NCBI RefSeq assembly: GCF_902652985.1
Contig: NC_047027.1
Location: forward strand, 7,006,001-7,070,000
Origin: Pecten maximus
Lineage: Eukaryota
Length of the DNA: 64,000 nt
Direction: 5' to 3'
Part shown: one piece after another, positions 12,689 through 62,603 of the stretch
How positions within the stretch are numbered: position 1 is the first letter of the stretch
How the letters are laid out: each line of letters opens with the position of its first letter
Program-made: the position numbers and the translations under genes
The notes under the pieces: generated by a model
The model's input: only the letters and a program-made list of their open reading frames with translations
Told to the model about the DNA's origin: nothing
The model's database searches: none

Positions 12689-13906
12689 ATGAATACTATT
12701 AGTACCGTAACCAGTAAAGTCGTGAGACCCGTCGTCAAATACACACAGGAGACGTTAACACGGGGTCTACAGTCAATGTAAGTAGTAGCTTTAATTCATT
12801 GACACATATTTATTTTATTTGTATTCAAATCCTCAGCTTTTCATCACTTCAGTAAATTATTTTAATATTATATATAGGGAAATCCCTCCATGTGCTGTAT
12901 ATTTGATATTTATCTATTTCTAATATTTAAATAATTACATATATGTTACCGTCTGTATACTTTAATACTGTTATATATATGATAGCTAGAAATATTTCTA
13001 CATTAAGGAAAACGTGTTAAAAAGAATCGTCATCCTTCTAAGTGTCTGCCTCCTTGAGAACTAGCTGGGTAGAATTTCCCCCTCGGCCTATTACCTCGTC
13101 AGACTAAATATTAAATCAGGGGTCACGTATTCGATCTTTAGTGGAGATGCTGAATAAAATAATGACCCCCTGGTATACTTGAAAGAGAGAACAGCCATTT
13201 TTATTTACGTATCGATTGTATAACAATATATTTTGAAATAAAGTTGAAATATTTTTTTTCTGTAGGACTCAAAACAATGGGCAGATAACATCCGCCACAG
13301 GGACCCCGCCCCCCTCTGCTGGCATGTTGAGGGCGTGGCAAACGCTACAGGAGGATAGCTGGGTCACCACCCAACGTCATTTGAGACCCCAACCCACGGA
13401 AACATTCAATACGATGTCGGCCGAGAGAAGTATACTAGGTAAGATAACATTTCAACTTTACTTGATGACATATCACACAGCTGAGGACGCTTACACTTCA
13501 GAAACGCGTGATCGGATTATCCATATTTCGTTATTGTATCGTCATACTCTGTTGATTTTGATACAAGTCAAATGTTTTTCTGCTGTTGTATTGCCAAAAT
13601 TAAAACGACATCGATAGTTATTTCACCTTAAATGGATTTTAAAACGTAGTTTACATTTCAGTATGAATATTGAAATAGAGAATCGGGAGATCGCAAGATT
13701 TATCAAAATAATATCTTTATGTTCATATTACGTCTGATCTAACCCTTTGTTAAGACTCCATGCTCACCACAAATATTTCAGTTAATAGAGTCTGTATAAT
13801 GTCTATTTTAGGATCAAGGAATCTCGGTCTTTTTGAGAAAAATTCGAATTCCGAGGATGTGCAATCCAGCATTCGAGCACTGTTGAAAGGATTTAAATTT
13901 GACTAG
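12689..13906 (+). CDS. Uncharacterised small protein family, paralogue A, 118 aa; exons 12689-12777, 13266-13438, 13812-13906
   Basis: GT-AG introns phases 2 and 1 give MNTISTVTSKVVRPVVKYTQETLTRGLQSMTQNNGQITSATGTPPPSAGMLRAWQTLQEDSWVTTQRHLRPQPTETFNTMSAERSILGSRNLGLFEKNSNSEDVQSSIRALLKGFKFD*; structure conserved in 8 other copies. Confidence 0.85.
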
Positions 13907-13929
13907 AGGACAGTGTGGTATCTACTCAG

Positions 13930-14205
13930 GCTTCCACATGGATCTTCCAAGGATTCCACATTGATATCCCCGTGGTTCCACATTGGTATCCCCGGGGTTC
14001 CGCGTTGATCTTCCTAGTATTCCACATTGATATCCCCGGGGTTCCACATGGATCTTCCAAGGATTCCACATTGGAATCCCCGGGGTTCCGCGTTGATCTT
14101 TCCGGCAAAGGACATTGATCTTCACAATATTCCATATTGATCTTCTCAGGAATTACACATGAATATTCCCAGGATTCCACAGCGATTCTCCCAGGATTCC
14201 CCAGT
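13930..14205 (+). repeat. Degenerate ~22-bp GGATTCCACATTG repeat in 3' UTR of A (homologues about 22965-23260 and 28145-28372)
   Basis: Recurrent GG(A/T)TTCCACATTG(G/A)TATCCCC / GATCTTCC units right after the stop codon. Confidence 0.8.
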
Positions 14206-14846
14206 GCAGGCTCCTAGACTCTGAAGTAATATGAATATTGACAGTATCATTGGTGAAGATTGTGGCTGAAATACTGATTTGAATTAAATGAATTCTTGTT
14301 TAGGTTGTAAGGTATGGAATCGAAAAAATGTTTGTTATGTATGAAAATGTCTGTGTTGTATTGAGAGTAAATTATTTTAAGTTGTGAATGGAATGATTGT
14401 TATTGACATTTGTCGTTATTTATTTGCATAGACTGATAACACTTTAAATGTAGAACTCCCCGATGTTATAATATAATAATTAAGTTGGAAGGAATGATTT
14501 TGATGAAAGGAGTCCTATGTGTCAATAGGTTGTGATGGAGTAAACAAAATGGCCGATTATGTTGTGTTTGTTATTGTTCATAAAACGATTGTAAGAAAAT
14601 GTAAATAAATTGTAATGAAATATAATCGATATTCTATGTTTTCATTATAATGAATCTGTATAGATGCTGGGTATTCAGCCTCGTCAACAGCCAAAAAAAA
14701 TTTCATTTGAGGTGGAATGTCAATGTAGCATTTGGTGGCAGCCTCACGGAAAACCGCCCATAACAATCGGAGTTAAATGTCTTGCTCCAGGTCAAATTCA
14801 CAATCGAACTGGATGGTCAATGGTCCCAGCTTCCCCTATAAATATT

Positions 14847-15140
14847 GCGTAAGAATTGTACCTGCTGCCCCAATTGATTTAATAATGAGAGGCGACTAAA
14901 TTTGGGATCTTATCATTTCTCTTCTTTCTCCTCCCTAATGTCTCCCTTGACAATACCTTCCTTTTTGTCCGGTAGTTGAGCGTTCACTCTACAGGAAAAG
15001 TTTGGATTCTGTCCTCTGATCGAGTCATACTGTCAGAGTCTTTAAACACGGTAGTTGCTGCCTCTGCTTAATCCTCAGCATTTTGAGGGATGAGACCATT
15101 GTCTTAAGCAGTATCTTCAGTGACCTAGCACTAAAAGAAA
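14847..15140 (+). mobile_element. SINE fragment (same family as 9435-10130); shorter copy at about 23838-24015
   Basis: GCGTAAGAATTGTACCTGCTGCCCC...GAGGCGACTAAATTTGGGATCTT...GGTAGTTGCTGCC. Confidence 0.7.
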
Positions 15141-15529
15141 GTAGACATTTATATCGCGCTATGGCAAGGACATGAACACGAACAGATACTACAGCCACTT
15201 CAAATCCACATACAGGCATCTCGGACACAGCTAGGAAGAATGACCTTTCACAGCCCATAGAGAAGTTTCATTGATTTGCGTGTTTTAAAATTAGACGTAC
15301 TTATCAACACCATTAGCTATACTACAAATATATATAAATGACGTGTAAAATGTCGTTTTCGTTAATGAATAAAGGAAAGTTGTTGTCTGTGTCTGGTACT
15401 ATACTTGAGCAGGCAAAACTAGTCGGTAATTCAAATATTACGACATGAATTAATAAAACAGAAATATAGCCGGGGTTTATGTATAATGCATTCAGGTAAA
15501 GTTAAAACTACCTTTAAATCATTTCTAGG

Positions 15530-18500
15530 TAAAACTATACGTCAATCAGTTATAGATAAAACTACACGTCAATCAGTTATAGATAAAACTACACGTAAAT
15601 CAGGTATAGATAAAACTACAAGTCAATCAGTTATAGATAAAACTACACGTCAATCAGTTATAGATAAAACTACACGTAAATCAGGTATAGATAAACTACA
15701 AGTCAATCAGTTATAGATAAAACTACACGTCAATCAGTTATGAAAAATACACGTCAAAAAAATAAAAAATGTAAAAACGTTATAGTTTAAATAAAAATCA
15801 GTTAAGATCAAGTTAGTTTTTAAAACAAAATCAGTTAAGATAAAAACTCACATAAATATTATGATAAAAACCGTCCGAAATAAAAAACCCCGTAAAACGT
15901 TAAATAAAAACACTCAAACATTTAGAAAAAACTACACTAAACGGTAAAAAAAAACAATCAACAGTTTAGATAAACCCAAAAAAAATCAGGGGATAAAACC
16001 CCTAATTATTTAGAAAAAAACCGAAACGTTATAGAAAAACTAAAATAAAAGTTTTTATAAAAAACAACGAAAAAAGAAAAAAAAAACCCCTATAGATAAA
16101 AAAACCCGTCAACAGTTTAAAATAAAAATACAAATCTTAAGATAAAACTCAAATCAGTTTAGAAAAACCCCAAAAGTTATAGAAAAACTACAAACAGTTA
16201 AAAAATAAAAAGGGAAAAAAAAAAATTTTAAATTTAAAAACACATGCAGTTTTAAAAAAAACCCCAATCAGTAAAAAAAACACACGTAAAACGGGAAGGG
16301 AAAAAACAAAACCCTTAAGTAAAACCAAATCATTTTTAATAAAAAATACACTCAAGTTAAGAAAAAACCCAAAAAAAAAAAAAAAATTAAAAAATTATAG
16401 ATAAAAACTACAAAAATCAAAATAAAAAACCAGTAATATTTGTAAAAAATACATTAACTTTAATAAAAAACCTATTCGTTTAAAAAAACAAAACTTAAAT
16501 CGGAAGAAAGACACTCAATTTTTTAAAACCAACGTAATCATTTGATAAAAAAATTTTTCATTATCATAAAAACCCAAAAGGGAAATAAAAACCACCAAGT
16601 TAAAAAAACTCCTTTAAACAGTTAAATAAAACAACCTAAACGTTAAGTTTAAAAAAAGAAAACGTTAAAAAAAAACACACGGAAATCAGGGGTAATAAAA
16701 CACACGTAAACATAAAAACACCAAAATCAGTTTTTAGATAAAACAACGTAAAACAGTTATAAAAAATTAAAAAAAATTTTAAAATAAAACCCAAACAGTT
16801 ATTAAAAAACCCCTAATAGTAAGAAAAACAACAAAATTTCCTTATAATAAAAAAAAATTAAACTTAAAAATAAAAATACAGTAAAACATTAAAAAAACAA
16901 GTAATCAGTTATATAAAAAAAACACGTAATCATAAAAAAACCTACAAGAAAAAGTTATAGATAAAATACAGTAATCTTTTGATAAACTAACGAAAACAGT
17001 TTAAATAAAAAAAAATTTATAGAAAAAAACTAAAAAATTTAAAAAAACCCTAATCATTAAAAAAACCAAAGTTAAAAAAAAAAACCCTAAAAAATAAAAA
17101 TTAAAAAATTTTGATAAAATTCACGTAATATTATAGATTTTAAAATAAAAATTAAAAAAAAACCCTGTAAATCAGTTATAGATAAAAAATACAAAACGTT
17201 TAAAATTTTAAAATAAAATTTTTAAAGTAAATGGTAAAAATAAAATAAAAAAACACATAAATTAAAAAAAACAGTAAATAAAAAAATCAAATTTTAAAAA
17301 AAAAAAGAATCTTTAGAAAAAAAAAGAAAACGTTTGAAAAAATCAACAGTTTAAAAATAAAAAAACCAAAAACATTATAGTAATACACAATCAGTTATAA
17401 AACTAACGAAAACAGTTGATAAAAAAACAGAAATCATTTTTAAAAAAAATACCGAAATATAAAAAAAAAAAACATGTCAATCTTAGGATAAAACTCACGA
17501 AAAATTAAAAAAACAACCAATTTTTTTAAAAAAAAAAACCCCTAAATTTAAAAAAAACCAAAAATTTTAAATAAAACAATAAATAATTTTAAAAAAAATA
17601 TAGTTAAAAAAACTCCCTTTTTAAACAGTTATAGATAAAACTAATAAAACAGTTATAGATAAAAAAACCTCATTAAAAAAATTAAAAAAGTAAAAAAAAA
17701 ACAAAATTAAAAAAATAATCAATTAAATAATAAAACTTTGTTTAAATAAAAATTTAAAAAATAATAAACATAAAATAAAAAATAAAATAAATAAAATTTT
17801 AAAAAAAATTAAAAAAATATAGTAAAAAACAGTCAAATTTTTAAAAAAAAAACAAAATAAAAAAAAGTAAAAAATTTAGAAAAATACAGTAATCAGTTTG
17901 ATAAAAAAAATTAAAATTTTGTAAAACTGCAAAATTTAAGAAAAAAAAAATAATCGAAGTAAAAAAAGGCAACAGGGAAAAAAACACATAAACAGGGAAA
18001 AAAAAAAGAAATGTTTAAAATAAAAAAACGTTAAAAAAATTTAAAAAAAAAAAAAAAAAATAAAAAAAAACAAGTCAAAATAAGAAAAACACAGAAAACA
18101 GTTTTGATAAAAAAAAGCAATCAGTTATAGAAAAACTACAGTCAACAGTTTAGATAAACTAACGTAAAAGTTTAGATAAAAACCCAAAACAAAAAAAAAA
18201 AAATTTTAAAAAAATTAAATTTAAATAAACCCTAAACGTTATAGAAAAAAATTCACGCAATAAATTTAAGAAAAACACCAACAGTTTGATAAAAAAAAAT
18301 TAAATCCAAATAAAAAAAACTAACGTAAAACATTAGATAAAAAAATAAAAGAAAATAAAAATTTTTAAATAAATAAAATAAAAAAAAAACCAAAAGTTTA
18401 AAAAAAACACAGAAAAACTTTTTAAAAAATACAAGTCAAACAGTTATAGAAAAAAAAAAAGGGAAAATAATCAATTTAAAAAAAAACCAATCAGGGTTAT

Positions 18501-21303: not shown

Positions 21304-21351
21304 GGGATTTTCCCATGATATTTTTTATCTAAATATAGAACGGGGATTCCT
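21304..21351 (+). promoter_or_regulatory. kappaB-like + MEF2-like + kappaB-like module upstream of B (homologues 26376 for C, 36531 for D)
   Basis: GGGATTTTCC (21304), CTAAATATAG (21329), GGGGATTCCT (21342). Confidence 0.55.
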
Positions 21352-21697: not shown

Positions 21698-22941
21698 ATG
21701 AATACTATTAGTAGTGTAACCAGTAAAGTCGTGAGACCCGTCGTCAAATACACACAGGAGACATTAACACGGGGTCTACAGTCAATGTAAATAGTAACTT
21801 TAATTCATTGACACATATTTATTTTATTTGTATTCAAATCCTCAGCTTTTCATCACTTCAGTAAATTATTTTAATATTATATTTAGGGAAATCCCTCCAT
21901 GTGCTGTATATTTGATATTTATCTATTTCTAATGTTTAAATAATTACATATATTACCGTCTGTATACTTTAATACTGTTATATATATGATAGCTAGAAAT
22001 ATTTCTACATTAAGGACAACGTGTTAAAAAAGAATCGTCATCCTTGTAAGTGTCTGCCTCCTTGAGAACTAGCTAGGTAGAATTTCCCCCTCGGTCTATT
22101 ACCTCGTCAGACTAAATATTAAATCAGGGGTCACGTATTCGATCTTTAGTGGAGATACTGAATAAAATAATGACCCCCTGATACACCAAGTATACTTGAA
22201 AGAGAGAACAGCCATTTTTATTTACGTATCGATTGTATAACAATACATTTTGAAATAAAGTTGAAATATTTTTTTTACTGTAGGACGCAAAACAATGGGC
22301 ACATACCATCCGCCACAGGAACCCCGCCCCCCTCTGCTGGCATGTTGAGGGCGTGGCAAACGCTACAGGAGGATAGCTGGGTCACCACCCAACGTCATTT
22401 GAGACCCCAACCCACGGAAACATTCAATACGATGTCGGCGGAGAGAAGTATACTAGGTAAGATAACATTTCAACTTTACTTGGTGACATATCACACAGCT
22501 GAGGACGCTTATACTTCAGAAACGCGTGATCGGATTATCCATATTTCGTTATTGTATCCTCATACTCTGTTGATTTTGATACAAGTCAAATATTTTTCTG
22601 CTGTTGTATTGCCAAAATTAAAACGAAATCGATAGTTATTTCACCTTAAATGGATTTTAAAACGTAGTTTACGAAACATTTTAAGTTACATTTCAGTATG
22701 AATATTGAAATAGAGAATCGGGAGATCGCAAGATTTATCAAAATAATATCTTTATGTTCATATTACGTCTGATCTAACCCTTTGTTAAGACTCCATCCTC
22801 ACCACAAATATTTCAGTTAATAGAGTCTGTATTGTGTCTATTTTAGGATCAAGGAATCTCGGCCTTTTTGAGAAAAATTCGAATTCCGAGGATGTGCAAT
22901 CCAGCGTTCGAGCATTGTTGAAAGGCTTTAAATTTGACTAG
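21698..22941 (+). CDS. Family paralogue B, 118 aa; exons 21698-21786, 22284-22456, 22847-22941
   Basis: Near-identical to A with open frame; exon-1 donor is GTAAAT. Confidence 0.82.
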
Positions 22942-24029
22942 AGGACAGTGTGGTATCTTCTCAGGCTTCCACATGGATCTTCAAAGGATTCCACATTGGT
23001 ATTCCCGGGGTTCTGCGTTGATCTTCCTAGTATTCCGCATTGGTTTCCCCGGGGTTCCATATTGATCTTCTCAGGATTCCACATTGGTATCCCCGGGGTT
23101 CCGCGTTGATTTTCCAAGGATTCCACATTGGTATCCCCGGGGTTCCGCGTTGATCTCTCCGGCAAAGGACATTGATCTTCACAGTATTCCATATTGATCT
23201 TCCCGGAATTACACATGAATATTCCCAGGATTCCACAGCGATTCTCCCAGGATTCCCCAGTGCAGGCTCCTAGACTCTGAAGTAATATGAATAACTGCTT
23301 TGTATTCAATGAATTCTTGTTTAGGTTGTAAGGTATGGAATAGAAAAAATGTTTGTTTTGTATGGAAATGTCTCTGTAGTATTGAGAGTAAATTATTTTA
23401 AGTTGTGAATGGGATGATTGTTATTGACGATTGTCGTTATTTATTGTCGTAGACTGATAACACTTTAAATGTAGAACTCTCCGATGTTATCAAAGGAGTC
23501 CTATGTGTCAATAGGTTGTGATGGAGTAAACAACATGGCCGAGTATGTTGTGTTTGTTATTGTTCATAAAACGATTGTAAGAAAATGTAAATAAATTGTA
23601 ATGAAATATAATCGATATTCTATGTTTTCATTATAATGAATCTGTATGGATGCTGAGTATTTAGCCTCGTCAACAGCCAAAAACATTTTGTTTTAGGTGG
23701 AATGTCCTTGTAACAAATAACAAATGGTGGAAGCCTCACGGAATACCGTCCATAGCAATCGGAGTTAAATGTCTTGCTCAAGGTCAAATTCACAATCGAA
23801 CAGGATAGTTAAAGGTCTCAGCCCACTATAAATATTGCGTAAGAATTGTACTAGCTGCCCCAATTGCTTAAATAGTGAGAGGCGACTAAATTTGAGATAT
23901 TTTCTCTTCTTTCGTAACGACTTTCTTCTTCCTAATGTCTCCCTTGAAAATACCTCACTTCTGGCCTTTAGTTGAGCGTTTACTCTTACTCGAAACGTTT
24001 TGGTTCTGTCCCCTGATAAAGTTACAGTT

Positions 24030-24965
24030 ACAGATAAAAACTACACGTCAATCAGTTATAGATAAAACTACACGTAAATCAGTTATAGATAAAACTACAC
24101 GTAAATCAGTTATAGATAAAACTACACGTCAATCAGTTATAGATAAAACTACATATAAATCATTTATAGATAAAACTACACGTCAATCAGTTATAGATAA
24201 AACTACACGTAAATCAGTTATAGATAAAACTACACGTAAATCAGTTATAGATAAAACTACACGTCAATCAGTTATAGATAAAACTACACGTAAATCAGTT
24301 ATAGATAAAACTACACGTAAATCAGTTATAGATAAAACAACATGTAAATCAGTTATAGATAAAACTACACGTCAATCAGTTATAGATAAAACTACACGTC
24401 AATCAGTTATAGATAAAACAACATGTAAATCAGTTATAGATAAAACTACACGTAAATCAGTTATAGATAAAACTACACGTCAATCAGTTATAGATAAAAC
24501 TACACGTCAATCAGTTATAGATAAAACTACACGTAAATCAGTTATAGATAAAACTACACGTCAATCAGTTATAGATAAAACTACACGTAAATCAGTTATA
24601 GATAAAACTACACGTAAATCAGTTATAGATAAAACAACATGTAAATCAGTTATAGATAAAACTACACGTAAATCAGTTATAGATAAAACTACACGTCAAT
24701 CAGTTATAGATAAAACAACATGTAAATCAGTTATAGATAAAACTACACGTAAATCAGTTATAGATAAAACTACACGTAAATCAGTTATAGATAAAACTAC
24801 ACGTAAATCAGTTATAGATAAAACTACACGTCAATCAGTTATAGATAAAACTACACGTCAATCAGTTATAGATAAAACTACACGTCAATCAGTTATAGAT
24901 AAAACTACACGTAAATCAGTTATAGATAAAACTACATGTAAATCAGTTATAGATAAAACTACACG
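24030..24965. repeat. 27-bp satellite, about 35 clean copies, followed by a short 21-bp repeat (to about 25065)
   Basis: Exact 27-nt periodicity; source of the 395-aa RQSVIDKTT ORF. Confidence 0.97.
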
Positions 24966-26767
24966 TTATATTAACAATATCACTAGTTATATTAACAATA
25001 TCACTAGTTTTATAAACAATACCACGCGTTATATTAACAATATCACTAGTTTTATTAACAATATTCCGTTTTGTAATTTTGCTATTTACGATAATTGTAA
25101 TAAAGGCCAGTCTTATAAGTAATGCGAGTTAATTCTTCAAGCCCGACATTCAATTGAACTGTACGAGGTATTTTTGTTGGTAATGTCTGGACCTAAACTT
25201 CTCCAGTATATGAATCTTAAGACGCAAGTTCACTAATATTGTTTCTCAAAGCAATGAATTAGATATGATATATTTTCATGTTACATTAATAAAATAAAAC
25301 ATGGTCTTTATAGTGGTAACGACGGTTAATAAATAAGACAAAAAACATATAACAATGGTTTCGATATAATGAATTAAAGGTAAAACAACACGTAAACTTC
25401 ATTATTGATTTATTTATTTACCTACGATATGTTAGAAAAGTGCACCCCATCCCAACAGTAACACCGGAACAAGCGGATTTTTATCTAAATTTAGAACGGG
25501 GATTTCTGTACGCACAGAAATAGACTACGTTTTAACAATAAGGATGATGCAAGTCTTTCTATTGATAACAACGGAAATATGTTGATATTTGAGACCAGTT
25601 TTGTACCAAAGTATCTTCTAGTATGAAAATATCTTCGTATGCATTCAAATGAATCTGAATTATGACATTTTAAACAGAAAAATACATATATTCCTCGGGG
25701 TTCATATAAATAATAAATTCATCTTGACTTGCGACTTTATACACCCAATATTTCAAGTGTGGTACAATATTAGTTCCTTATAGATAGTACCCTGACTTTT
25801 GATATTTCCGATGAGTATGTACCCAGACTTGTGACTTCACACCTTATATTTCAAGTTTGTTACAATATTACTTCCCACGAGTTAGTATCCACACTTGTGA
25901 CTTCACACCTTATATTCTGAGTTTGGTACAATGTTACTTCCCACGAGTTAGTACCCAGACTTGTGACTTCACACCTTATATTCTGAGTTTGGTACAATGT
26001 TACTACCCAGACTACATACTCATCATCGTTTTATTTACCTGGTATGTTTGTGTAGATAATCTATGTTCATAACTTTTACACAAGGAAACTTATCCGACAA
26101 AAACAACTTCGGCGTCATGGACCGGTTACTGTTCTTCTATTTCTATATCATATCAAAGCTTGAAATATCTGTAGGCATTAGTGATCACGAATGCGTCCAA
26201 ATTTCTGGGATTTTTTAGAAAAAAAAGTTTTGATTTTTGTTTTTGTTGTTTTTAAAAATTTTACTTAGATCTTATCAAGTGTAAACGGTAAATGAAAAAG
26301 AATAAATAAAAAAAAAAAAACTGATTGGAATCTGATTATAATAAAGTTACATTTAAAACTAATCATTAATCTTTCGGGATTTTCCCATGATATTTTTTTC
26401 CAAATATAGAACGGGGATTCCTTTTCAGAAATAGCCTACTAACGCTTTCCACGGTAAATATGACACAACACTGCCGTATTTAAACGAGCCTGTTTATGTT
26501 AAACAAGTATTTATCTAAAGTTCTATGACTTATTTCATAGTAACATAGTTTACAATCCGAAATATGTATATTAAACCTTGGTATCCAAATGTCAACAAGT
26601 AAAAATCACTCGTTCTGTAAAGTTTCACTAAGGTCATCTCATTTTTCAATGCGTCATAAGGAAAGGAAAACCCACTGAAAAACCGCGGTGTCTATATATA
26701 GATATACGAACGTATAAATAGGGAAGAGTACAGGGATGCTATATCACAAACACCACTGATACCAGAC

Positions 26768-26984
26768 ATGAATACTATTAGTACCGTAACCAGTAAAGTC
26801 GTGAGACCCGTCGTCAAATACACACAGGAGACATTAACACGGGGTCTACAGTCAATGTAAGTAGTAACTTCTCTTTATTTCACTCACATGTTTTTGTTTG
26901 TTTTTGTTTTACTTTAAAGCTGTTTTAATTATTCCAGATCATAAGCTTACCATCACTCCCGTTATTTATTTAGATAATATATAT

Positions 26985-27016
<32 letters not shown>

Positions 27017-28129
27017 TGTACATGTTGAAAAATCCTTCCATGTGCTAATATATAATATGTATTTATATATTTTGATTTCTTGAGAATCCGTAGATCCGTA
27101 GCTTATCATCGATTCCGTTATTATTTAGTTCAAATATTTTAATGATTATAGTTTCAATATATTGTGGTCTATGTATTAAAGATATGATAGAAATATTTCT
27201 AGATAAGAAATGTTAAATAATAAACGTCACCCATGTAGGTATCTGATTTTACAGAACAAGCTAGGGAGAGCTTATCCTCTCGCCATCCGACTATAATTTA
27301 TTCCAGAGGCCCCGTATCTCTAGTGGAAACGATGAGATAAAGTATACTTTCGTGAGAGAACACTCGAACATACATTTTATTTCAATGCGTCTTTCTGTGA
27401 GTTTTATTTCTCTTTGTCTTGTTAATTTAGAAGTATAAATTGTACGCCACGACAATATTAAATAAATCAAAATTATATTTTTTCAACTGTAGGGCGCATC
27501 ACAATGGCCATATACCGTCCGCCACAGGGACCCCACCACCCTCTGCTGGCATGTTGAGGGCGTGGCAAACGTTACAGGAGGATAGCTGGGTCACCACCCA
27601 ACGTCATTTGAGACCCCAACCCACGGAAACATTCAATACGATGTCGGCGGAGAGAAGTATACTAGGTATGATTACATTTCAACTTTACTTGGTGACATAT
27701 CACACAGCTGAGGACGCTTATACTTTAGAAACCTCTGGTCGGATTCTCCTAGTTTCGTTATTGTATCAGTATTTTCTGTTGAGTTTGTTTTGTATAGATA
27801 AATATTTTTCTGGAGTTATAATAAATGTTACATTTCAGTATGAATATAGAAATAGGGAATCGGGAAATCTAATTAATAAAAATAATAATATTCATGTTCC
27901 TGATACTTCTGAATTAACCCTATGCTAAGGCTCCATCATCACCGCAATCATTTAAGTAATTAGAGTCAGTAGCATGTACAACCAACCACATTTTACAATG
28001 TATCCATCTTATTTACTGTGATTATCTATTTTAGGATCACGGAATCTCGGCCTTTTCGAGAAAAGTTCTAATTCTGAGGATTTGCAATCCAGTGTTCGAA
28101 CATTGCTGAAAGGATTCAAATTTGATTGA
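26768..28129 (+). CDS. Family paralogue C, 118 aa; exons 26768-26856, 27493-27665, 28035-28129
   Basis: Same exon lengths as A/B despite diverged introns; exon 3 vs B has 9 synonymous and 3 non-synonymous codon changes and a TAG to TGA stop swap. Confidence 0.88.
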
Positions 28130-36530: not shown

Positions 36531-36850
36531 GGGATTTCCCCGCCATTTCTCTGATCTAAATTTAGAATGAGAATTTCTTTTTAAAGCTGTTTCCCCTTTT
36601 CCCCATGCAAGGATAACACAAATTTATATTTCGTATCTCTAAATATTTCAGAAAATTTGAGTTCATATATCTTGTAATAATATGAAATATAGAGATGAGT
36701 TTTAATCATTTAACACATGGTGTTGATTTCAATATTAAACTGACTGAATCGATTTAACAGAAACCCACTCGTGATTCACTCGAGTGTAAACTTTCAGTGC
36801 CTCAAGTCTATTTATAGCCGAGGAAACACGTCTTGTGTGTGTATATATAA
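36531..36850 (+). promoter_or_regulatory. Promoter of D: GGGATTTCCC (36531), CTAAATTTAG (36556), CTATTTATAG (36808), TATATAA (36844)
   Basis: Consensus kappaB and MEF2 matches at positions homologous to B/C. Confidence 0.55.
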
Positions 36851-36911: not shown

Positions 36912-38296
36912 ATGAACACACAGCGTGCTGTCAGACTGGTTATGAAGATGCCACTACATACACAACAACACAACTCGATACGGAGTCTACAGACGATGTA
37001 AGTAGTCTATTTAACGGATCATTTTCGGGGGTTATGTTTTTCTAAGTTTTGTCGTTTTAAGATATTTTGTCCCATGTGTATTGACGTTAGTGTGTGTTTT
37101 TTTTGTCCCCACGTTGGTATGTTGTCACCGTATGCAGCTATTTGCTTACGGTTTGGCAAGCCAAGTTGTCATTTATTACGGAGCATCGTTGATCCAGGAA
37201 TTTTCCAAATTATATCAGATATCTTATAATTTAAGCTTTATAAGATATCTCAAATAATAAATAAGATATCTTATCATTATTTTTTTCTTCTTATAAAGTT
37301 TAAATAAGATACCTTATAAACATATACGATATCTCATATATTATATGGGATATCTTATTTAATTTGGTAAGATACTGGATCATCATTGCTCCACGAATAA
37401 ATGACAACTTGGCTTGCCTTGTTATGCAGTAGTATATTCTCCTTGTGACATTTGATTAAGTATGTGTGGGTAGACCTAATGTTATGAACACAACAACGAT
37501 TTTTAATTCCTTATGATAAAGACACCGTCCTATTGGTCCTTTAATTCTGAGCTTTGTTGAATTAGATGTTGAAAGGAAATACGAAAACTAACGTAAATTC
37601 TATGATATTATATATAATTATGATTTATAATTACATTAATTTCTACGATATTTACAGGGTCACTGTAAACCCTGCCGTGGAGGCCACGCCCCCTACAATG
37701 CCCACTATTATGATTTATAATTACATTAATTTCTATGATATTTACAGGGTCACTGTAAACCCTGCTGTGGAGGCCACGCCCCCTACAATGCCCACTATTA
37801 TGACGACTTGGCGGACGTTACAGGAAAAGAACTGGTATACAACTCAGGGTCACCAACAGTCACAAACCTTTGATACGTTCGGCTCAGCCGGGAAAAAGAT
37901 TCTAGGTATGTTTAACATGTTATCACTTTATATTTTACACGTCCAATGTTCAGATTGTTGTTGGAGAAGCAGATAATTTTTGTCTTACTTATCAATTATG
38001 TCCGTGTAAATCTAAACTTTTATTATGAAAAATGTACATTAACTAAAATAAATTGGCATTAAAACCAAGTCTACATAAAAAGAGACTGACAGATGGAGTA
38101 TTTACAATGTGACTCCTACTTTTTTTTTATACAGTTAACTAACATTTGTTATTTGCAATTGACTAGTTTTTTTTTAAATTTGTTTTCAGGAACACGGTAC
38201 CTTGGCGTTTCTGAAGAAATCCCGAGATCTGAAAGTGAACAATTAAGTATGCTACAAAACTTTGGAAGTTTTACATTGAAGTCACAACGGCTGTGA
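36912..38296 (+). CDS. Divergent family paralogue D, 116 aa (146 aa with upstream acceptor); exons 36912-36997, 37748(or 37658)-37905, 38190-38296
   Basis: MNTQRAVRLVMKMPLHTQQHNSIRSLQTMVTVNPAVEATPPTMPTIMTTWRTLQEKNWYTTQGHQQSQTFDTFGSAGKKILGTRYLGVSEEIPRSESEQLSMLQNFGSFTLKSQRL*; shares RxLQ, TPP, WxTLQExxWxTTQxH, ILG(S/T)RxLG and intron phases with A; AATAAA at about 38658. Confidence 0.85.
37148..37425. mobile_element. MITE in intron 1 of D
   Basis: TIRs GGCAAGCCAAGTTGTCATTTATT / AATAAATGACAACTTGGCTTGCC with internal AAGATATCTT palindromic repeats. Confidence 0.8.
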
Positions 38297-43043: not shown

Positions 43044-43888
43044 CTACACTGTAAATGTTAATTGGTTTATACTGTCTTCTTTTGTTTGTAAACGTTTTGT
43101 CTTTAATCTTCGCATCATCTTTTTTGTCGCTGTTATCGGTAAATTTGTTGGTGCTGGTTTCAAAATCGACGGCACCTGGGCAACCATAAAATCTCCGAAA
43201 ATTGGTTGTCTGTCCAATAACACTGGTTCATGTTTTAATAGTTTCCTGAATATTTCCAACTGCTTCGATCCTGAGAGAAAAGGTGAAAATGTGTTATAAC
43301 AGTGTTTAATTATGTTGTCTCTTTCTGCTTCAGATTTAATATCAACTGTATCTAGAACTAGATATATATTATTTAGATATTTAAAAAAACAAACCTTTAA
43401 TTGTCTTCCCCACTGTGTTGAAGGTGTCCATTTCACCTGGTCTGACCTGACCGTCCTGACGAAGTGCGCCACACACCCTCAACATATCTTCCGAGGGGGC
43501 GTGGTCGCCCTTGTGGATTTTACTTGGTACTTGAGCGGGGAACTGTATGAGTAAAATATTCAGAGTTAATTTACTAATAACAGATATACATAGCAATGTT
43601 TTGTCGGGAAATGGTACATAGAATAGCTTCTGTTTTGTTTGGTAGATAATTGTTTAACGTCCTATCAACATCTAAGGCTATTTTATATTGTCCTTTCAAT
43701 TCAAGATAATTAAAATATTGATATCATGGGGAAATGATCTGATGTAAAATAACATAATCTGAATTGATATAACCACAATAAGAACACTTTAATAGTTGAC
43801 ATACTTACAATGTTTGAAAACGTCTACTGATGTCTTTCCGTGTCGATACGATCATGTGCCTCAATAGATTACTACATGTAGCGTTCAT
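43044..43888 (-). pseudogene. Family paralogue E1; exons 43888-43809, 43542-43395, 43270-43044; exon 2 is 1 nt short (frameshift in G-run, possibly a sequencing error)
   Basis: G5 at 43495-43499 versus G6 in E2/E4/E5; exon 2 is 148 rather than 149 nt; otherwise intact. Confidence 0.6.
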
Positions 43889-48535: not shown

Positions 48536-51500
48536 GGTTTAATATTATATCTGAGCTCTCTCGTGTATCGTGGTTACAGACAGAAGTGTTCAGTCAAAAT
48601 GAGCCTAATGGCTTAGCACACAACAGTCTGAATATAAACAATGAATGAACAACAGAAATGATCGTACGATATCGCGTGTCAAGTTAAGCAGCCTCTAAAT
48701 ATGTTGGGGTTTTCCTTCCGTGTCGTGAAGGATGGACACGTGCGGATATTAACAGAAACTCGGGATATCATTTTATAAACATGTTCTATGTATAGAATTC
48801 TGGCAATTTTTCCAGTTTACAGCAGAAAAGCTATATATAGAGTTTAGAAATACCATGTTTATTTTTATATATCTGTACATAATGATGGTAACATAGAAAC
48901 ATATTAATATGAAACTAGAAATACTTGGATTTTAAATCTTACAATATGTACTTATATTGGTGTTTGATTACGATATATATATATTTGTATGTTGTTAATT
49001 CGTGATTGATATTAATATCACATTCTCGATCCAAGTTTACATAAAAGATCACGAATTTTCAATCGCGCTTCCTTTACATTTCACAACCAATATATGCGAC
49101 ATTGCATATTAAATATTATCTTAATCATTCAGCCTATATAAACATGTATAACGTGGGTTTTATGTTAGATTGACAATCATGTGCGTTTGTTCGGGAGATT
49201 GATAATCATGTGCGTGTTTGTTTGAGTTAAATAGACAATCATGAATAGTAAACTGTAGAAACGTCTTTGTTACTGTCATCCGTTTGATGACAAACCTTTT
49301 CTATACATAAGTTTTGTTAAACGTGTTTTAAATGAATGCGGGATGAGTTACTTATGGGATATATAATATTCTTCTGAATGTAATCCATTATGGCTAAAGC
49401 ATTTTATTAAGTTAAGACTTTATGACCAGTACTTACAGAAATGGCAGAGTGATGGACACAATTCATCAAAGGCTATATGTTATAGAGTTTTTAAGGATAA
49501 CTGTCATTTTAAAAGTTATTTACATACTTTAATAAAGATAGTCATTTTTTCGTTAATTTCGTACAACTAACCATCAATTTATCAGATTGAGTGTAAGGAA
49601 AGAACATGTTCACATTGTAATCGTCAACAAATTGGTGATGAATTTCATGATTTACTTGAATGTACAATATCGTCTGCTCATAGAATTTTATATATAGACA
49701 AATACTGTTGGTCAAGACCAAATATCATTAATTTTAACGAACTCATGAATATAACTAAAGTTAAAACACTAATCAAACTGTTACTTTTATCAGAATACTT
49801 AATAACATTATATATCCTCCTTGATAAAAATGAAAATGTTTTATTTTGAAACAGTGCCATGTATCAACTACGAGCACTACTTTAATTGTATATGTTTTAT
49901 TGTCAATATGTTTTTCTCTATACCTCATGTCAGTACATTTGCATGTGAAAAGAGAAGAAAACGAATTTGTATTTGATTTGATGTGTTTGTTTGTTTGGGT
50001 TACGGATAATCTAGATAGTGTGAGTTTGTTTGGGTTACGGATAATCTAGATAGTGTGTGTTTGTTTGGGTTACGGATAATCTAGATAGTGTGTGTTTGTT
50101 TGGGTTACGGATAATCTAGATAGTGTGTGTTTGTTTGTTTGGGTTATGTATAATCTAGACAGTGTGTGTTTGTTTGGGTTACGGATAATCTAGATAGTGT
50201 GTGTTTGCTTGGGTTACGGATAATCTAGATAGTGTGTGTTTGTTTGGGTAATGTATAATCTAGATAGTCTGTGTTTGGGTTACGGATAATCTAGATAGTG
50301 TGTGTTTGTTTGGGTTACGGATAATCTAGATAGTGTGTGTTTGTTTGGGTAATGTATAATCTAGATAGTGTGTGTTTGTTTTGGTTATGATAATCTAGAT
50401 AGTGTGTGTTTGTTTGGGTTACGGATAATCAAGATAGTGTGTGTTTGTTTGGGTTATGAGTAATCTAAATAACGTGTGTTTGCTTGGGTTATGTATAATC
50501 TAGATAGTGTGTGTTTGTTTGGGTTATGAGTAATCTAGATAGTGTGTGTTTGTTTGGGTTATGGGTAATCTAGATAGTGTGTGTGTTTGTTTTGGTTATG
50601 TATAATCTAGATAGTGTGTGTTTGTTTGGGTTACAGACAATCTAGATAGTTTGTGTTTGTTTGGGTTACGGATAATCTAGATAGTGTGTGTTTGTTTGGG
50701 TTACGGATAATCAAGATAGTGTGTGTTTGTTTGGGTTATGAGTAATCTAAATAACGTGTGTTTGCTTGGGTTATGTTTAATCTAGATAGTGTGTGTTTGG
50801 TTGGGTTATGAGTAATCTAGATAGTGTGTGTTTGTTTGGGTTATGGGTAATCTAGATAGTGTGTGTGTTTGTTTTGGTTATGTATAATCTAGATAGTGTG
50901 TGTTTGTTTGGGTTACAGACAATCTAGATAGTTTGTGTTTGTTTGGGTTACGGATAATCTAGATAGTGTGTGTTTGTTTGGGTTATGGGTAATATAGATA
51001 GTGTGTGTTTGTTTGGGTTATGGGTAATCTAGATAGTGTGTGTTTGTTTGGGTTATGGGTAATCTAGTATGTGTACGTGTGTAAACTATCACTGATTTTC
51101 CAATCAAAACATTGCTTATGGGAGAACTTTTAAGCTACCACGGTAGACTTTGCTATACAATGAAATTAACAGAATTTCAACCAGTATCTTCAGTGATACC
51201 AAATAAATTCCACAACTCGAGAAATACATTTGGTATTACTGAAAACATGGTAAGATATCCTCTATATATATCTCCTATAAACTACACTGACAATAGATAA
51301 TAGCATAGCGATCAATTCTATCTAGGAGTAATGTAGTTTTAAACGATTTAAAACAATCTCCTCAAAATATTCTGAAATCGGCTTAATTTCGATCATATAC
51401 ATGATACAGAAATAACAAAACAGGAAAATAACAATTGAGACATTTATTGATCACCCGTATACAATCCCTAAGTACAACACTCGACAGTGACTCATTACAC

Positions 51501-58284: not shown

Positions 58285-61200
58285 GGTTTACAATTAGATC
58301 TGAGCTCTCTCGTATATCGTGGTTACAGACAGAAGTGTTCAGTCAAAATAAGCCTAATGGCTTAGTACACAACAGCTTGAATAAGCAATGAATGAAAAAC
58401 AGAAATGATCGCACGATATCGCGTGTCAAGTTAAGCAGCCTCTAAATATGTTGGGGTTTTCCTTCCGTGCCGTGAAGGGTGGACACGTGCGGATATTAAC
58501 AGAAACTCGGAATATCATTTGATAAACATGTTGTTTGTATAGAATTCTGGCAATTTTTCCAGTTTTAGGCAGAAAAACTATATATAGAGTTTAGAAATAC
58601 CATGTTTATTTTTATATATCTGTACATAATGATGGTAACATAGAAACCTTTTAAAATGAAAATAGAAATACTTGGATTTTAAATCTTACAATATATACTT
58701 ATATTGGTGTTAGATTACGATATATATACATTTGTATGTTGTTAATTCGTGATTGATATTAATATCACATTCTCGATCCAAGTTTACATAAAATATCACG
58801 AATTTCCAATCGCGCTTCCTTTACATTTCACAACCAATACATGCGACATTGCATATTAAATATTATCTTAATCATTCAGCCTATATAAACATGTATAACG
58901 TGGGTTTTATGTAAGATTGACAATCATGTGCGTTTGTTCGGAAGATTGATAATCATGTGTGTGTTTGTTTGAGTTAAATAGACAATCATGAATAGTAAAC
59001 TGTAGAAACGTCTTTGTTACTGTCATCCGTTTGATGACAAACCTTTTCTATACATAAGTTTTGTTAAACGTGTTTTAAATGAATGCGGGATGAGTTACTT
59101 ATGGGATATATAATATTCTTCTGAATGTAATCCATTATGGCTAAAACATTTTATTAAGTTAAGACTTTATGACCAGTACTTACAGAAATGGCAGAGTGAT
59201 GGACACAATTCATCAAAGGCTATATGTTATAGAGTTTTTAAGGATAACTGTCATTTTAAAAGTTATTTACATACTTTGATAAAGATAGAGTCATTTTTTC
59301 GTTAATTTCGTACAACTAACCATCAATTTATCAGATTGAGTGTAAGGAAAGAACATGTTCACATTGTAATCGTCAACAAATTGGTGATGAATTTCATGAT
59401 TTACTTGAATGTACAATATCGTCTGCTTATAGACAAATACTGTTGGTCAAGACCAAATATCATTAATTTTAACGAACTCATGAATATAACTAAAGTTAAA
59501 ACACTAATCAAACTGTTACTTTTGTATTTGATTTTATGTGTTTGTTTGTTTGGGTTACGGATAATCTAGATAGTGTGTGTTTGTTTGGGTTACGGATACT
59601 CTAGATAGTGTGTGTTTGTTTGGGTAAAGTATAATCTAGATAGTGTGTGTTTGTTTGGGTTACGGATAATCTTGATAGTGTGTGTTTGTTTGGGTTACGG
59701 ATAATCAAGATAGTGTGTGTTTGTTTGGTTTATGTATAATCTAGATAGTGTGTATTTGTTTGGGTTACGGATAATCTAGATAGTGTGTGTTTGTTTGGGG
59801 TACGGATAATCTTGATAGTGTGTGTTTGTTTGGGTTACGGATAATCAAGATAGTGTGTGTTTGTTTGGGTTACAGATAATCTAGATAGTGTGTGTTTGTT
59901 TGGGTTATGAGTAATCTAGATAACGTGTGTTTGCTTGGGTTATGTATAATCTAGATAGTGTGTGTTTGTTTGGGTTATGAGTAATCTAGATAGTGTTTGT
60001 TTGTTTGGGTTATGGGTAATCTAGATAGTGTGTGTGTTTGTTTTGGTTATGTATAATCTAGATAGTGTGTGTTTGTTTGGGTTACAGACAATCTAGATAG
60101 TTTGTGTTTGTTTGGGTTACGGATAATCTAGATAGTGTGTGTTTGTTTGGGTTATGGGTAATCTAGATAGTGTGTGTTTGTTTGGGTTATGGGTAATCTA
60201 GATAGTGTGTGTTTGTTTGGGTTATGGGTAATCTAGATAGTGTGTGCTTGTTTGGGTTATGGGTAATCTAGTGTGTGTACGTGTGTAAACTATCACTGAT
60301 TTTACCAATCAAAACATTGCTTATGGGAGAACTTTTAAGCTACCACGGTAGACTTTGCTATACAATGAAATTAACAGAATTTCAACCAGTATCTTCAGTG
60401 ATACCAAATAAATTTCACAACTCGAGAAATACATTTGGTATTACTGAAAACATGGTTAGATATCCTCTATATATATCTCCTATAAACTACACTGACAATA
60501 GATAGTAACATAGCGATCAATTCTATCTAGGAGTAATATAGTTTTAAACGATTTAAAACAATCTCCTCAAAATATTCTGAAATCGGCTTAATTTCGATCA
60601 TATACATGATACAGAAATAACAAAACAGGAAAATAACAAGTGAGACATTTATTGATCACCCGTATACAATCCCTAAATACAACACTCGACAGTGACTCAT
60701 TACACCGTAATACAACCTCAAAAAAAAAAAACGGTATAACATAATCACACGAAATCAATCGTTTTACAACCAAGTTACTATAATATATTCAGACAAAAAA
60801 AAAAAAAAACGAAAACATGAATACTTTACAAACAACTATTTCAAACAAATAATCTAGAAGTTTATATATATGAAATCCCAAAAGACACACGCAATTATTT
60901 CCACTCTTCAATCCACCGGATACCACCGGCTGATTACACTGAACATCGCCATAAGTACATAGTACAATCACTAACGGCGATGTTTTCTATTGAAGATAAA
61001 ATCAAATCATGGTTATCTCCCTTTACACCTCACAACCAATAATACTATTTACAGAAAAGTATGTTTACACTATACCCTGACAAGAATAATGTTTGTAAAC
61101 AATCAGAGAACCCCCTAGATTTGTTTAACCTCCTCAGTACGGATGTACAGTCTCCGGTATGGTCCCCCGTTAACACACACTAGAAGTGTGGAGAGCAGGC

Positions 61201-61757
61201 GTATAGATTGATAATATAACTTCCCCGTCATTAAATGCTTCCTTATCATACTTAATAAAACAAACATGGGCATGTAAATATATAAATATATTGGCTATAT
61301 GTATCTGATATGATCGCTTTAACGGTGTCTTGTAAAGAAGATTTAACATAGACGTACATAACTGTTCAACCTCACCCTTGGTTGTATCCCATTATTGTAC
61401 TGTTTTAAAACACTACATCAAAACTATTTGTGAAAGTTCCTTGTAAGATAGAATTGCACACTTATGGTTACCTAGGCGGTCAGGCTTCGGTTCCCCGATC
61501 AGACTGAATAAGTATGTGGTCACCTGCCCGATCACGTCGGGTTTCTCCGTATTCCCTGGTTTCATTCCTCAGTAAGATCCCTCGCGCGCTTCAATCCGGG
61601 CCGACAAGAGTGATTAATACCAGTTGATACATTTCATTTTGAAATTGTTGTAAAATAAATAATTTACATTTTAGAATGAAACTTACATCATCCTAAAAGT
61701 TCATGTTACTGTTAACGGTACACAACATCTCTAACCTATTACAGCCTACTTTCTACC

Positions 61758-62603
61758 CTACACTGTAAATGTTAATTGGTTTATACTGTCTTCTTTTGTT
61801 TGTAAACGTTTTGTCTTTAATCTTCGCATCATCTTTTTTGTCGCTGTTATCGGTAAATTTGTTGGTGCTGGTTTCAAAATCGACGGCACCTGGGCAACCA
61901 TAAAATCTCCGAAAATTGGTTGTCTGTCCAATAACACTGGTTCATGTTTTAATAGTTTCCTGAATATTTCCAACTGCTTCGATCCTGAGAGAAAAGGTGA
62001 AAATGTGTTATAACAGTGTTTGATTATGTTGTTTCTTTCTGCTTTAGATTTAATATCAACTGTATCTAGAACTGGATATATATTATTTAGATATTTGAAA
62101 ATACAAACCTTTAATTGTCTTCCCCACTGTGTTGAAGGTATCCTTGTCACGTGGTCTGAATTGACCGTCCTGACGAAGTGCGCCCAACACCCTCAACATA
62201 TCTTCCGAGGGGGGCGTGGTCGCCCTTATGGATTTTACTTGGTACTTGAGCGGTGAACTGTATGAGTAAAATATTCAGAGTTAATTTACTAATAACAAAT
62301 ATACATAGCAATGTTTTGTCGGGAAATGGTACATAGAATAGCGATTGTCTGGTTTGGTTTATTATTGTTTAACGTCCTATCAACATATAAGGCTATTTTA
62401 AATTGTCCTTTCAATTCAAGATAATTAAAATATTGATATCATGGGGAAATTATCTGATGTAAAATAACATTATCTGAATTGATATAACCACAATAAGAAC
62501 ACTTTAATAGTTGACATACTTACAATGTTTGAAAACGTCTACTGATGTCTTTTCGTGTCGATAAGATCACGTGCCTCAATAGATTACTACATGTAGCGTT
62601 CAT
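61758..62603 (-). CDS. Family paralogue E5, 151 aa; exons 62603-62524, 62257-62109, 61984-61758
   Basis: Open frame; exon 2 reads ...TTPPSEDMLRVLGALRQDGQFRPRDKDTFNTVGKTIKG. Confidence 0.82.

Follow-up and report, generated by a model that had tools for sequence, protein, structure and literature searches.

Gene cluster and gene models

The window analyzed here, a stretch of 64,000 nt of Pecten maximus contig NC_047027.1 (positions 7,006,001 to 7,070,000, forward strand), contains nine three-exon loci, located exactly where a previous sequence-only reading had placed them. In window coordinates they are organized as follows:

Gene A, + strand, exons 12689-12777, 13266-13438, 13812-13906; 118 aa, identical to XP_033758421.1 (P0005)
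Gene B, + strand, exons 21698-21786, 22284-22456, 22847-22941; 118 aa, identical to XP_033758422.1 (P0001)
Gene C, + strand, exons 26768-26856, 27493-27665, 28035-28129; 118 aa, identical to XP_033758424.1 (P0003)
Gene D, + strand, exons 36912-36997, 37748-37905, 38190-38296; 116 aa, identical to XP_033758425.1 (P0013)
Locus E1, - strand, exons 43888-43809, 43542-43395 (148 nt), 43270-43044; frameshifted in the assembly
Gene E2, - strand, exons 48535-48456, 48189-48041, 47916-47690; 151 aa, identical to XP_033758894.1 (P0008)
Gene E3, - strand, exons 53955-53876, 53046-52898, 52773-52547; 151 aa, identical to XP_033758895.1 (P0010)
Gene E4, - strand, exons 58284-58205, 57938-57790, 57663-57437; 151 aa, identical to XP_033758896.1 (P0006)
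Gene E5, - strand, exons 62603-62524, 62257-62109, 61984-61758; 151 aa, identical to XP_033758892.1 / XP_033758893.1 (P0009)

Every intron of the nine loci has GT-AG borders, with phase 2 followed by phase 1, as that reading had described. The motifs it quoted are present as well: an MN start, R-x-L/F-Q-S/T, TPP (absent from E3), a W-containing helix, ILGSRxL or IKGSKQL spanning the exon 2/3 junction, and FGxF in D and E. For all eight intact models in the window, the spliced translation equals the RefSeq protein letter for letter (LOC117340768 X1 and X2, LOC117340770, LOC117340771, LOC117341156, LOC117341157, LOC117341159 and LOC117341160), and each matching record carries the name "uncharacterized protein". 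A further RefSeq isoform, X3 (P0004), joins an A-type exon 1 to exons 2-3 from B. The cluster is a genuine protein-coding gene family that is already annotated as uncharacterized; the genes, which had been called hidden, are so only with respect to a prokaryote-style ORF list, whereas RefSeq holds identical spliced models. The count of nine members is correct for the window, but the cluster is larger: just past the window end follow a sixth full E copy (E6, the tenth full copy) and E exon 1 three more times on its own. Across the whole genome the family is confined to this locus, except for a fragment resembling A exon 1 that lies on a small unplaced contig.

Individual copies show local peculiarities. 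Gene A is preceded by a TATA box at approximately 12636-12645, a 90-bp tandem duplication at 37617-37803 has given gene D a second exon 2 acceptor further upstream, and intron 1 of E3 has grown to 829 nt. Locus E1 has an exon 2 of 148 instead of 149 nt. The reading frame is broken in the assembly because a run at approximately 43494-43499 counts five C instead of six, a one-base frameshift that had been missed. The extra base occurs in every contig covering this run, but these contigs bear diagnostic letters of E4. Other open reading frames were discarded as genes: the 395-aa ORF that separates B from C (23935-25122) arises from in-frame reading of a 27-bp minisatellite, and flanking ORFs are low-complexity or satellite artefacts.

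Transcription and splicing

RNA contigs, the type of their run being guessed, join 43809 to 43542 and 43394 to 43269, and the joint between exons 2 and 3 of E2 is found in record 29 of RNA contig set X9. The spliced RNA contig X6 record 9 bears E4-specific letters. The joints of the RNA contigs are missing from DNA run X1. The 3' UTR of E2 ends near 46586, where the loose poly-T end of an RNA contig marks the poly(A) site. The junctions predicted for the E type are thereby borne out by RNA; the RNA contigs cover this type, and splicing of A, B, C and D rests on identity with the RefSeq models. The family produces polyadenylated transcripts whose introns are removed at the predicted GT-AG junctions, the RNA coming from E copies.

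Distribution and duplication history

A HMMER profile search against 1.84 billion representative proteins returned nine true matches, from four scallop species only (P. maximus, M. yessoensis, Y. balloti and A. irradians), and a word-indexed profile search revealed no further family members. Three bacterial matches (P0012, P0020 and P0021) were rejected as homologues; they are long repeat proteins, and artefacts because many weak repeat matches sum up. The family records are:

P. maximus: LOC117340768, LOC117340770, LOC117340771, LOC117341156, LOC117341157, LOC117341159, LOC117341160, LOC117341237
M. yessoensis: LOC110454623, LOC110454621
Y. balloti: LOC132565032, LOC132565034, LOC132565052
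A. irradians: XP_069115156, XP_069115158, XP_069115159

By these searches, detectable homologues are confined to Pectinidae, which makes this a lineage-restricted orphan family. Its coherence is illustrated by pairwise BLASTP of A with a Mizuhopecten E protein (E = 5e-16). In the tree, A, D and E each form a clade of several scallop genera. An A-like and an E-like protein are present in all four genera and a D-like protein in three of them. The three subfamilies are therefore old and, judged by this distribution, older than the split of Pecten, Mizuhopecten, Ylistrum and Argopecten, while the expansions of A and E are specific to P. maximus. The additional copies in this species are young (dS 0.01-0.25): tandem duplication, in units of 4-9 kb that include minisatellites, has raised A to 3 copies and E to 6 copies and some fragments, in P. 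maximus alone. The earlier proposal of an old, lineage-restricted family that is still expanding agrees with the Pectinidae-only homologues, the multi-genus clades and the young P. maximus copies. The scallop RefSeq records contain the same genes and orthologues, but give no family name, domain or function. Full-text literature searches by family accession, locus name and topic returned nothing relevant, and none of the sources searched records that these genes form one family with three old subfamilies.

Selection and coding capacity

Comparison of the A, B and C paralogues yields dN/dS values of 0.11-0.14 (binomial p about 1e-6), with 0.11-0.13 for C versus A and B, indicative of strong purifying selection on these genes. 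Among the E paralogues dN/dS is about 0.5 and not significantly below 1 (p = 0.09), reaching values above 1 in the youngest pairs; by these ratios, the E copies are under weaker constraint than A/B/C. The 9 synonymous and 3 non-synonymous changes previously reported for exon 3 of B versus C become 11 and 3, respectively, when the differences are recounted by codon. Conservation of exons but not introns, another earlier claim, holds only for pairs of greater age, namely C compared with A/B, E6 compared with the remaining E copies, and pairs drawn from two subfamilies. Between E6 and the remaining E copies, approximately 5-6% of coding positions differ (26 of ~453 sites for E2), compared with 13-25% of intron positions. 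The claim does not apply to A versus B, whose introns are 98% identical.

Could these loci be non-functional, that is, transcribed non-coding loci, pseudogenes or repeat-derived ORFs annotated by prediction? The frameshift of E1 in the assembly, the three solo exon-1 fragments, the E ratios not significantly under neutrality and the minisatellite-rich surroundings are in line with such an explanation. Yet, the frames of 93-152 aa have stayed open across four genera at 68-74% (A) and 41-48% (E) identity, intron positions and phases are conserved, the A/B/C ratios are low and a transposon or viral domain is absent, making this explanation hardly credible. An origin from a transposon or virus was rejected as well: transposase, integrase, reverse transcriptase and capsid domains are absent from the family proteins, the family occupies a single genomic locus plus one exon-1 fragment, and orthologues exist in four genera.

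Features of the family proteins

The products, 93-152 aa long, contain no known domain in the resources searched. None of the nine exon translations of A, D and E2 matched a Pfam-A family at E <= 10, and precomputed Pfam annotation of the full-length database proteins has no entry. A sequence profile search of the PDB gave a chance match only (E = 0.34) and no solved mitochondrial complex subunit, while the ESM Atlas offered neither a usable match nor a stored model for A and E2. A match to a characterised family or transposon protein, which would have spoken against a novel family, is thus absent from Pfam, PDB and ESM Atlas alike. Inspection of the alignment by eye found no signal peptide, hydrophobic N-terminal core or conserved cysteine column, and the N-termini carry a charge every 3-5 residues; together with the empty Pfam result, this upholds the description of proteins without recognised domain, signal peptide or membrane segment.

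Two AlphaFold2 models have low confidence (pLDDT 52 and 54, pTM 0.20 and 0.16) and contain no structure beyond isolated helices, of which the central one scores best and the N-terminal one is drawn at low confidence. The prediction for the products is thus disorder, interrupted by a few separate helices. The best-conserved element is the central amphipathic helix M-L-R-x-W-x-x-L-Q, in which E1, E2, E4 and E5 have Cys or Leu in place of the Trp. The C-terminal helix of the E proteins is strongly basic (KKMMRRLKTKRLQTK).

A presequence-like exon 1

Mitochondrial presequences comprise the N-terminal 20-60 residues, are rich in Arg/Lys and Ser/Thr and are almost devoid of Asp/Glu. The N-terminal 21-27 residues of 15 family proteins have this composition. 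They are rich in Ser/Thr, with 66 K+R (17.6%) and 7 D+E (1.9%) among 374 residues, compared to 197 (12.7%) and 133 (8.6%) among the 1555 residues of the remainder; an acidic residue occurs within the segment in a few copies. Each of the six A-type proteins has a helical hydrophobic moment above that of shuffled sequences (p 0.00-0.04), while D (0.13-0.18) and most E proteins (0.24-0.41) do not reach significance. The motif of the processing peptidase has Arg at -2 or -3, as R-x-F/Y/L followed by S/A. In the family, a nearly invariant Arg25 is followed by x-L/F/I, with Gln or His, not Ser/Ala, as the next residue.

We propose that exon 1 may encode a cleavable mitochondrial presequence, basic, Ser/Thr-rich, acid-poor, amphipathic and ending at Arg-x-Leu/Phe. 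After import, the mature chain of approximately 90 residues would bind a partner via its amphipathic helix. A suitable analogue is the ATPase inhibitor IF1, a small nuclear-encoded mitochondrial protein with a cleavable presequence. Proteins of the IF1 type are similarly ~100-150 aa long, start with a basic, acid-poor, amphipathic N-terminus ending in Arg-x-hydrophobic, and have a mostly disordered mature part with a helix, as predicted here. Unlike them, the scallop family lacks sequence similarity to any solved chain and its import is putative; to our knowledge, multi-copy tandem clusters are also unusual for small presequence-bearing mitochondrial proteins.

The same family may alternatively consist of cytosolic or nuclear disordered regulators, whose basic N-terminus serves as a binding or nuclear/nucleolar element and which act via short linear motifs: Thr-Pro-Pro, the M-L-R-x-W-x-x-L helix and the C-terminal FGxF or basic helix. 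Predicted disorder with isolated helices suits such regulators, as do the resemblance of the basic E helix to a nuclear localisation signal, the non-significant N-terminal moment of D and most E proteins, and the lack of similarity to solved mitochondrial subunits in the PDB profile search. Nevertheless, 15 of 15 proteins from four genera keep the basic, acid-poor segment of ~25 residues ending in Arg-x-hydrophobic. A segment kept in this way while its sequence drifts is typical of targeting peptides and not of binding motifs, and we regard the regulator explanation as rather unlikely.

Promoter sites

The upstream regions of the family genes share two types of candidate sites:

36531..36565, + strand, upstream of D: kappaB-like decamer GGGATTTCCC, with MEF2-like CTAAATTTAG 25 nt later
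48706..48715, - strand, ~171 nt upstream of the E2 ATG: kappaB-like site GGAAAACCCC (gene strand)

The arrangement at D recurs upstream of B (21304-21338). The kappaB-like site is also perfect at E4 (58453) and E5 (62774); an additional base in E1 and a single substitution in E3 take it off the consensus used in the search. There are 11 kappaB decamers where 2.3 are expected, each adjoining a family gene, and 14 MEF2-like sites versus 2.5 expected, counts that are inflated because paralogues inherit their promoters by descent. The E promoters are 94% identical, E6 included despite its diverged introns. Perfect kappaB decamers adjoin members of the A, D and E subfamilies. As both site types are common to the three subfamilies, stress, immune or muscle-dependent transcription is suggested as part of the proposed mechanism.

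Such sites also evoke an immune-effector cluster, in which kappaB-driven small peptides are released or antimicrobial. Bomanin and other loci of Drosophila are kappaB-driven tandem clusters of short immune-induced genes, and share with the scallop family the tandem array, the short lineage-restricted genes and the nearby kappaB-type sites. The fast evolution of these short genes, the perfect decamers by all three subfamilies and the diversification of the E copies point in the same direction. However, and unlike Bomanin-type clusters, the family has no signal peptide, hydrophobic N-terminal core or conserved cysteine pattern, Pfam, which includes antimicrobial peptide families, gives no match, and A/B/C are strongly conserved in contrast to typical arms-race effectors. 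We therefore consider an effector role very improbable.

Interpretation and significance

Taken as a whole, a scallop-only paralogue family with a presequence-like exon 1, conserved helix and shared promoter sites as outlined above is, in our judgment, fairly probable. The specific combination of presequence, partner binding by the mature chain and kappaB/MEF2 regulation, drawn jointly from sequence features, is more tentative, a proposal that we consider somewhat less likely than not. A still bolder scenario, which we put forward as a long shot, is that of scallop-specific mitochondrial microproteins under NF-kappaB/MEF2 control, docking with their W-helix on a conserved partner while the E copies diversify at the Trp. 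The pattern hydrophobic-x-x-x-W-x-x-L is that of the p53 transactivation helix that binds MDM2. Under this microprotein scenario, the variation of the helix Trp (W, C or L) in E would mark an evolving interaction, for example one that serves to control how mitochondria of the swimming muscle function under stress or immune challenge.

Bivalve genomes contain thousands of uncharacterized lineage-restricted genes, few of which have been grouped into families with a testable hypothesis. Here, 10 P. maximus genes were united with orthologues from three further scallop genera in a single family, and testable leads emerged: an exon 1 that resembles a presequence, an amphipathic helix that has been conserved, and kappaB/MEF2-like sites that the promoters have in common. 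At present it is a well-documented but ordinary orphan family; if its members prove to be mitochondrial microproteins regulated by stress or immunity, it would illustrate clade-specific innovation clearly.

Gene models and existing annotation

The nine loci are members of a genuine orphan family of small disordered proteins that is confined to scallops, is already annotated and has multiplied in tandem in P. maximus. Searching the window by local tblastn and blastn with the exons of locus A recovered all nine at the positions proposed in the sequence-only reading, each with three exons and GT..AG introns of phase 2 then 1; every motif quoted in that reading is present.

Family loci in the window (position, strand, product, identical RefSeq record)
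A: ~12.7 kb, + strand, 118 aa, XP_033758421 (LOC117340768 isoform X1)
B: ~21.7 kb, + strand, 118 aa, XP_033758422 (LOC117340768 isoform X2)
C: ~26.8 kb, + strand, 118 aa, XP_033758424 (LOC117340770)
D: ~36.9 kb, + strand, 116 aa, XP_033758425 (LOC117340771)
E1: ~43.9 kb, - strand, frame broken
E2: ~48.5 kb, - strand, 151 aa, XP_033758894 (LOC117341157)
E3: ~54.0 kb, - strand, 151 aa, XP_033758895 (LOC117341159)
E4: ~58.3 kb, - strand, 151 aa, XP_033758896 (LOC117341160)
E5: ~62.6 kb, - strand, 151 aa, XP_033758892 / XP_033758893 (LOC117341156)

Cluster look-ups and exact comparison show that the eight intact spliced models are RefSeq records letter for letter, all named 'uncharacterized protein'. 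An exon-wise search with the reading frame that contains B exon 2, scored on the exon alone, matched a 118-aa P. maximus RefSeq protein at 100% identity and, second, a 115-aa Mizuhopecten yessoensis protein; E2 exon 3 matched 151-aa P. maximus proteins. The cluster, which had been called hidden, is thus missing only from an ORF list made in the prokaryote style, and the gap in the existing records is the family name and function rather than the gene models. RefSeq isoform X3 of LOC117340768 (protein P0004) joins an A-type exon 1 to B exons 2 and 3 (window:12689-22941), implying either that transcription starts at the A promoter and crosses 9 kb to reach B, or that a read was mis-assigned between near-identical paralogues.

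Exon 2 of E1 measures 148 nt instead of the expected 149, and its frame is broken in this assembly because a C run counts five bases where six is usual, a frameshift that escaped the sequence-only reading. In D, a 90-bp tandem duplication (window:37617-37803) copies the exon 2 acceptor along with 56 nt from the start of that exon; use of the upstream acceptor (37657/37658) would retain the open frame and add 30 residues, while the RefSeq model chooses the downstream one.

Distribution, age and amplification

A HMMER profile built from the family alignment (A2) and run against 1.84 billion representative proteins gave twelve matches, nine of them scallop proteins from P. maximus, M. yessoensis, Ylistrum balloti and Argopecten irradians. 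The other three, bacterial, were rejected as homologues, being long repeat proteins in which many weak per-repeat scores are summed. A word-indexed profile search found no further relatives beyond the HMMER set. Mizuhopecten, Ylistrum and Argopecten each have one A-like and one E-like protein. Annotated D-like proteins with neighbouring accession numbers occur in Ylistrum and Argopecten, and none was found among the database proteins of Mizuhopecten. Homology of A and E is demonstrated by the BLASTP alignment of P. maximus A with Mizuhopecten E (56.6 bits, E = 5e-16, 34% identity over 95 residues), and a genome search with D exon 2 picks up A, B and C with E values near 1e-4. In a maximum-likelihood tree A, D and E form separate multi-species clades (support 90/95, 97/95 and 100/100), so that the subfamilies are older than the divergence of these genera. 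The E copies of P. maximus group in a clade of their own, and on this evidence A and E have expanded recently and in P. maximus alone. The description of the family as old, lineage-restricted and still expanding is borne out by this combination of scallop-only matches, multi-species clades and recent expansions.

Six-frame searches of the whole 918-Mb P. maximus assembly, in which the window occupies G000:C13:7006001-7070000, confine the family to this locus, except for an A exon-1-like fragment on the small unplaced contig C3147. A sixth intact E gene (E6) lies past the window end in opposite orientation, in a flanking stretch of the same contig (L003:1323-2113), with a product identical to database protein P0007 (LOC117341237), which raises the number of full-length loci from the nine first counted to ten. 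Just beyond the window, ahead of E6, exon 1 of E stands alone with its promoter in three copies (L001:953-1032, 3448-3527 and 5763-5842; G000:C13:7070953-7075842) ~2.4 kb apart; they are 100% identical to the query E5 exon 1, lack exons 2 and 3, and are truncated duplication units.

Every E duplication unit also carries a 35-bp minisatellite (GTGTGTGTTTGTTTGGGTTATGGATAATCTAGATA) in 16-31 copies, which accounts for the regularly spaced peaks of GC skew across the window.

Arrays of the 35-bp minisatellite GTGTGTGTTTGTTTGGGTTATGGATAATCTAGATA
window:45346-46226
window:49983-51074
window:55403-55962
window:59538-60278
window:63858-64000

On the A/B/C side, a 4-kb stretch (window:16000-20000) has a GC content of 0.16-0.18 and an AT skew above 0.4, and accounts for much of the longer spacing from A to B (9.0 kb, against 5.1 kb from B to C). 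It reads like a degraded, A-inflated form of the adjacent 27-bp minisatellite (15492-15757, 24025-24966), and the assembly may here contain long-read noise that was left uncorrected. The upstream flank (window:1-1726 and the adjoining stretch L004, G000:C13:6996001-7006000) consists mostly of satellites, among them a 16-bp unit in 108 copies; its long ORFs on both strands give Pfam matches that are low-complexity noise only, and no recognisable neighbouring gene was found within 10 kb.

Selection

Selective constraint was estimated by Nei-Gojobori dN/dS between paralogue pairs within P. maximus.

dN/dS of A/B/C pairs (synonymous : non-synonymous changes)
A-B: 0.14 (8 : 4)
A-C: 0.13 (18 : 9)
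B-C: 0.11 (17 : 7)

With ~23% of sites synonymous, the synonymous excess in A-C and B-C has a binomial p of about 1e-6. Divergence of A and B from C is 20-39% in the introns, where indels are numerous, against ~7% in the coding sequence. Pairs of E copies give dN/dS of 0.4-0.6, not significantly under neutrality (p = 0.09), with values >1 in E2-E5 and E3-E6, both of which have very few synonymous changes; E6 differs from the other E copies by 13-25% in its introns and by ~5-6% in its coding sequence. Among orthologues, the E frames stay open over 143-152 aa, with 41-48% identity, and A is 68-74% identical. Set against each other, these figures indicate that A is tightly constrained and E faster-evolving.

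Transcription and promoters

Reads from three probable RNA runs of three studies, plus one DNA run, were placed on the E1 and E2 stretch (window:43000-48700), where RNA contigs join the predicted E-type junctions. Record 9 of run X6 covers 43948-43809, 43542-43394 and 43269-43063, skipping exactly both predicted introns, which read CT..AC on the + strand. Record 29 of run X9 joins E2 exon 2 (48189-48040) to exon 3 and the 3' UTR (47915-47537), and X9 contigs tile this UTR as far as a poly-T loose end at 46586, a poly(A) site ~1.1 kb past the E2 stop codon. Neither E1 joint (43269/43394, 43542/43809) occurs in the DNA run, which indicates splicing rather than a processed DNA copy. Diagnostic E4 letters at 43855, 43879 and 43901 mark the X6 contig as an E4 transcript placed on its near-twin E1. 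Every contig over E1 has an extra base at 43494; as the contigs bear E4 letters, the E1 frameshift is either real or a homopolymer assembly error. For A, B, C and D, splicing is predicted from identity with the RefSeq models. Intron 1 contains a short high-copy interspersed repeat, probably of MITE or SINE type (window:48282-48317 in E2, 43650-43678 in E1): contig depth there rises to ~24,000 in both DNA and RNA runs, and numerous loose ends continue into unrelated sequence.

The kappaB decamer consensus GGGRNWYYCC has 11 matches in the window against 2.3 expected, all 11 adjoining a family gene, and there are 14 matches to the MEF2-like CTAWWWWTAG where 2.5 would be expected.

Sites near family genes
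kappaB decamer, -381 to -394 from the ATG: B, C, D
kappaB decamer, intron 1: A, B
kappaB decamer, ~170 nt upstream of the ATG: E2, E4, E5
MEF2-like, -76: A, B, C
MEF2-like, -104 and -356: D
MEF2-like, ~-295: E1-E5 (5/5)

The kappaB-to-MEF2 spacing is 25 nt in both B and D, and the E promoters are 94% identical over seven copies, including that of E6 with its diverged introns. Since paralogues inherit sites by descent, the raw counts overstate independence; more properly, each of the three anciently diverged subfamilies retains candidate kappaB/MEF2-like sites within 400 nt. In all seven aligned E promoters, an invariant CGCACGTGTCC stands ~20 nt upstream of the kappaB-like site (window:48730-48745 and equivalent positions); it is a palindromic E-box, also with a hypoxia-response-like ACGTG core.

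Protein character and proposed localisation

No exon matches a Pfam family, no solved structure matches the family profile (best E = 0.34), and the ESM Atlas gave no neighbour. AlphaFold2 with a 17-sequence alignment predicts isolated helices only, both in A (4-31, 48-62, 89-92, 104-112; pLDDT 52, pTM 0.20) and in E (4-17, 45-56, 78-87, 125-141; pLDDT 54, pTM 0.16). The best-scored segment of both models is a central helix (M-L-R-A-W-Q-T-L-Q-E-D in A, M-L-R-V-x-G-A-L-R-Q-D in E), and no other stretch of the alignment is as well conserved. In E the Trp of this helix is ancestral, since E3, E6 and the E proteins of all three further genera have it; it is replaced by Cys in E1, E2 and E4 and by Leu in E5.

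The 21-27 residues encoded by exon 1 drift in sequence and keep a constant character in 15/15 proteins analysed from four genera. The segment is basic and poor in acids (K+R 17.6%, D+E 1.9%, against 12.7% and 8.6% in the remaining chain), Ser and Thr are plentiful, and it ends at a near-invariant Arg followed by x-Leu/Phe/Ile and then Gln. This gives it the look of an import signal, as in mitochondrial presequences with their Arg -2/-3 processing motif, and the possession of an exon of its own would fit such a role. Mitochondrial import of the family proteins is put forward tentatively, as less likely than not. In its favour, the helical hydrophobic moment exceeds that of shuffles in 6/6 A-type proteins; that it is not significant in D or most E proteins counts against import, as does the Gln after the motif. 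A role as cytosolic or nuclear disordered regulators is nearly as likely. Whichever localisation holds, the conserved amphipathic helix is a probable partner-binding element. With exon 1 as a putative import signal and this helix as the probable binding element, the family now has a testable functional hypothesis.
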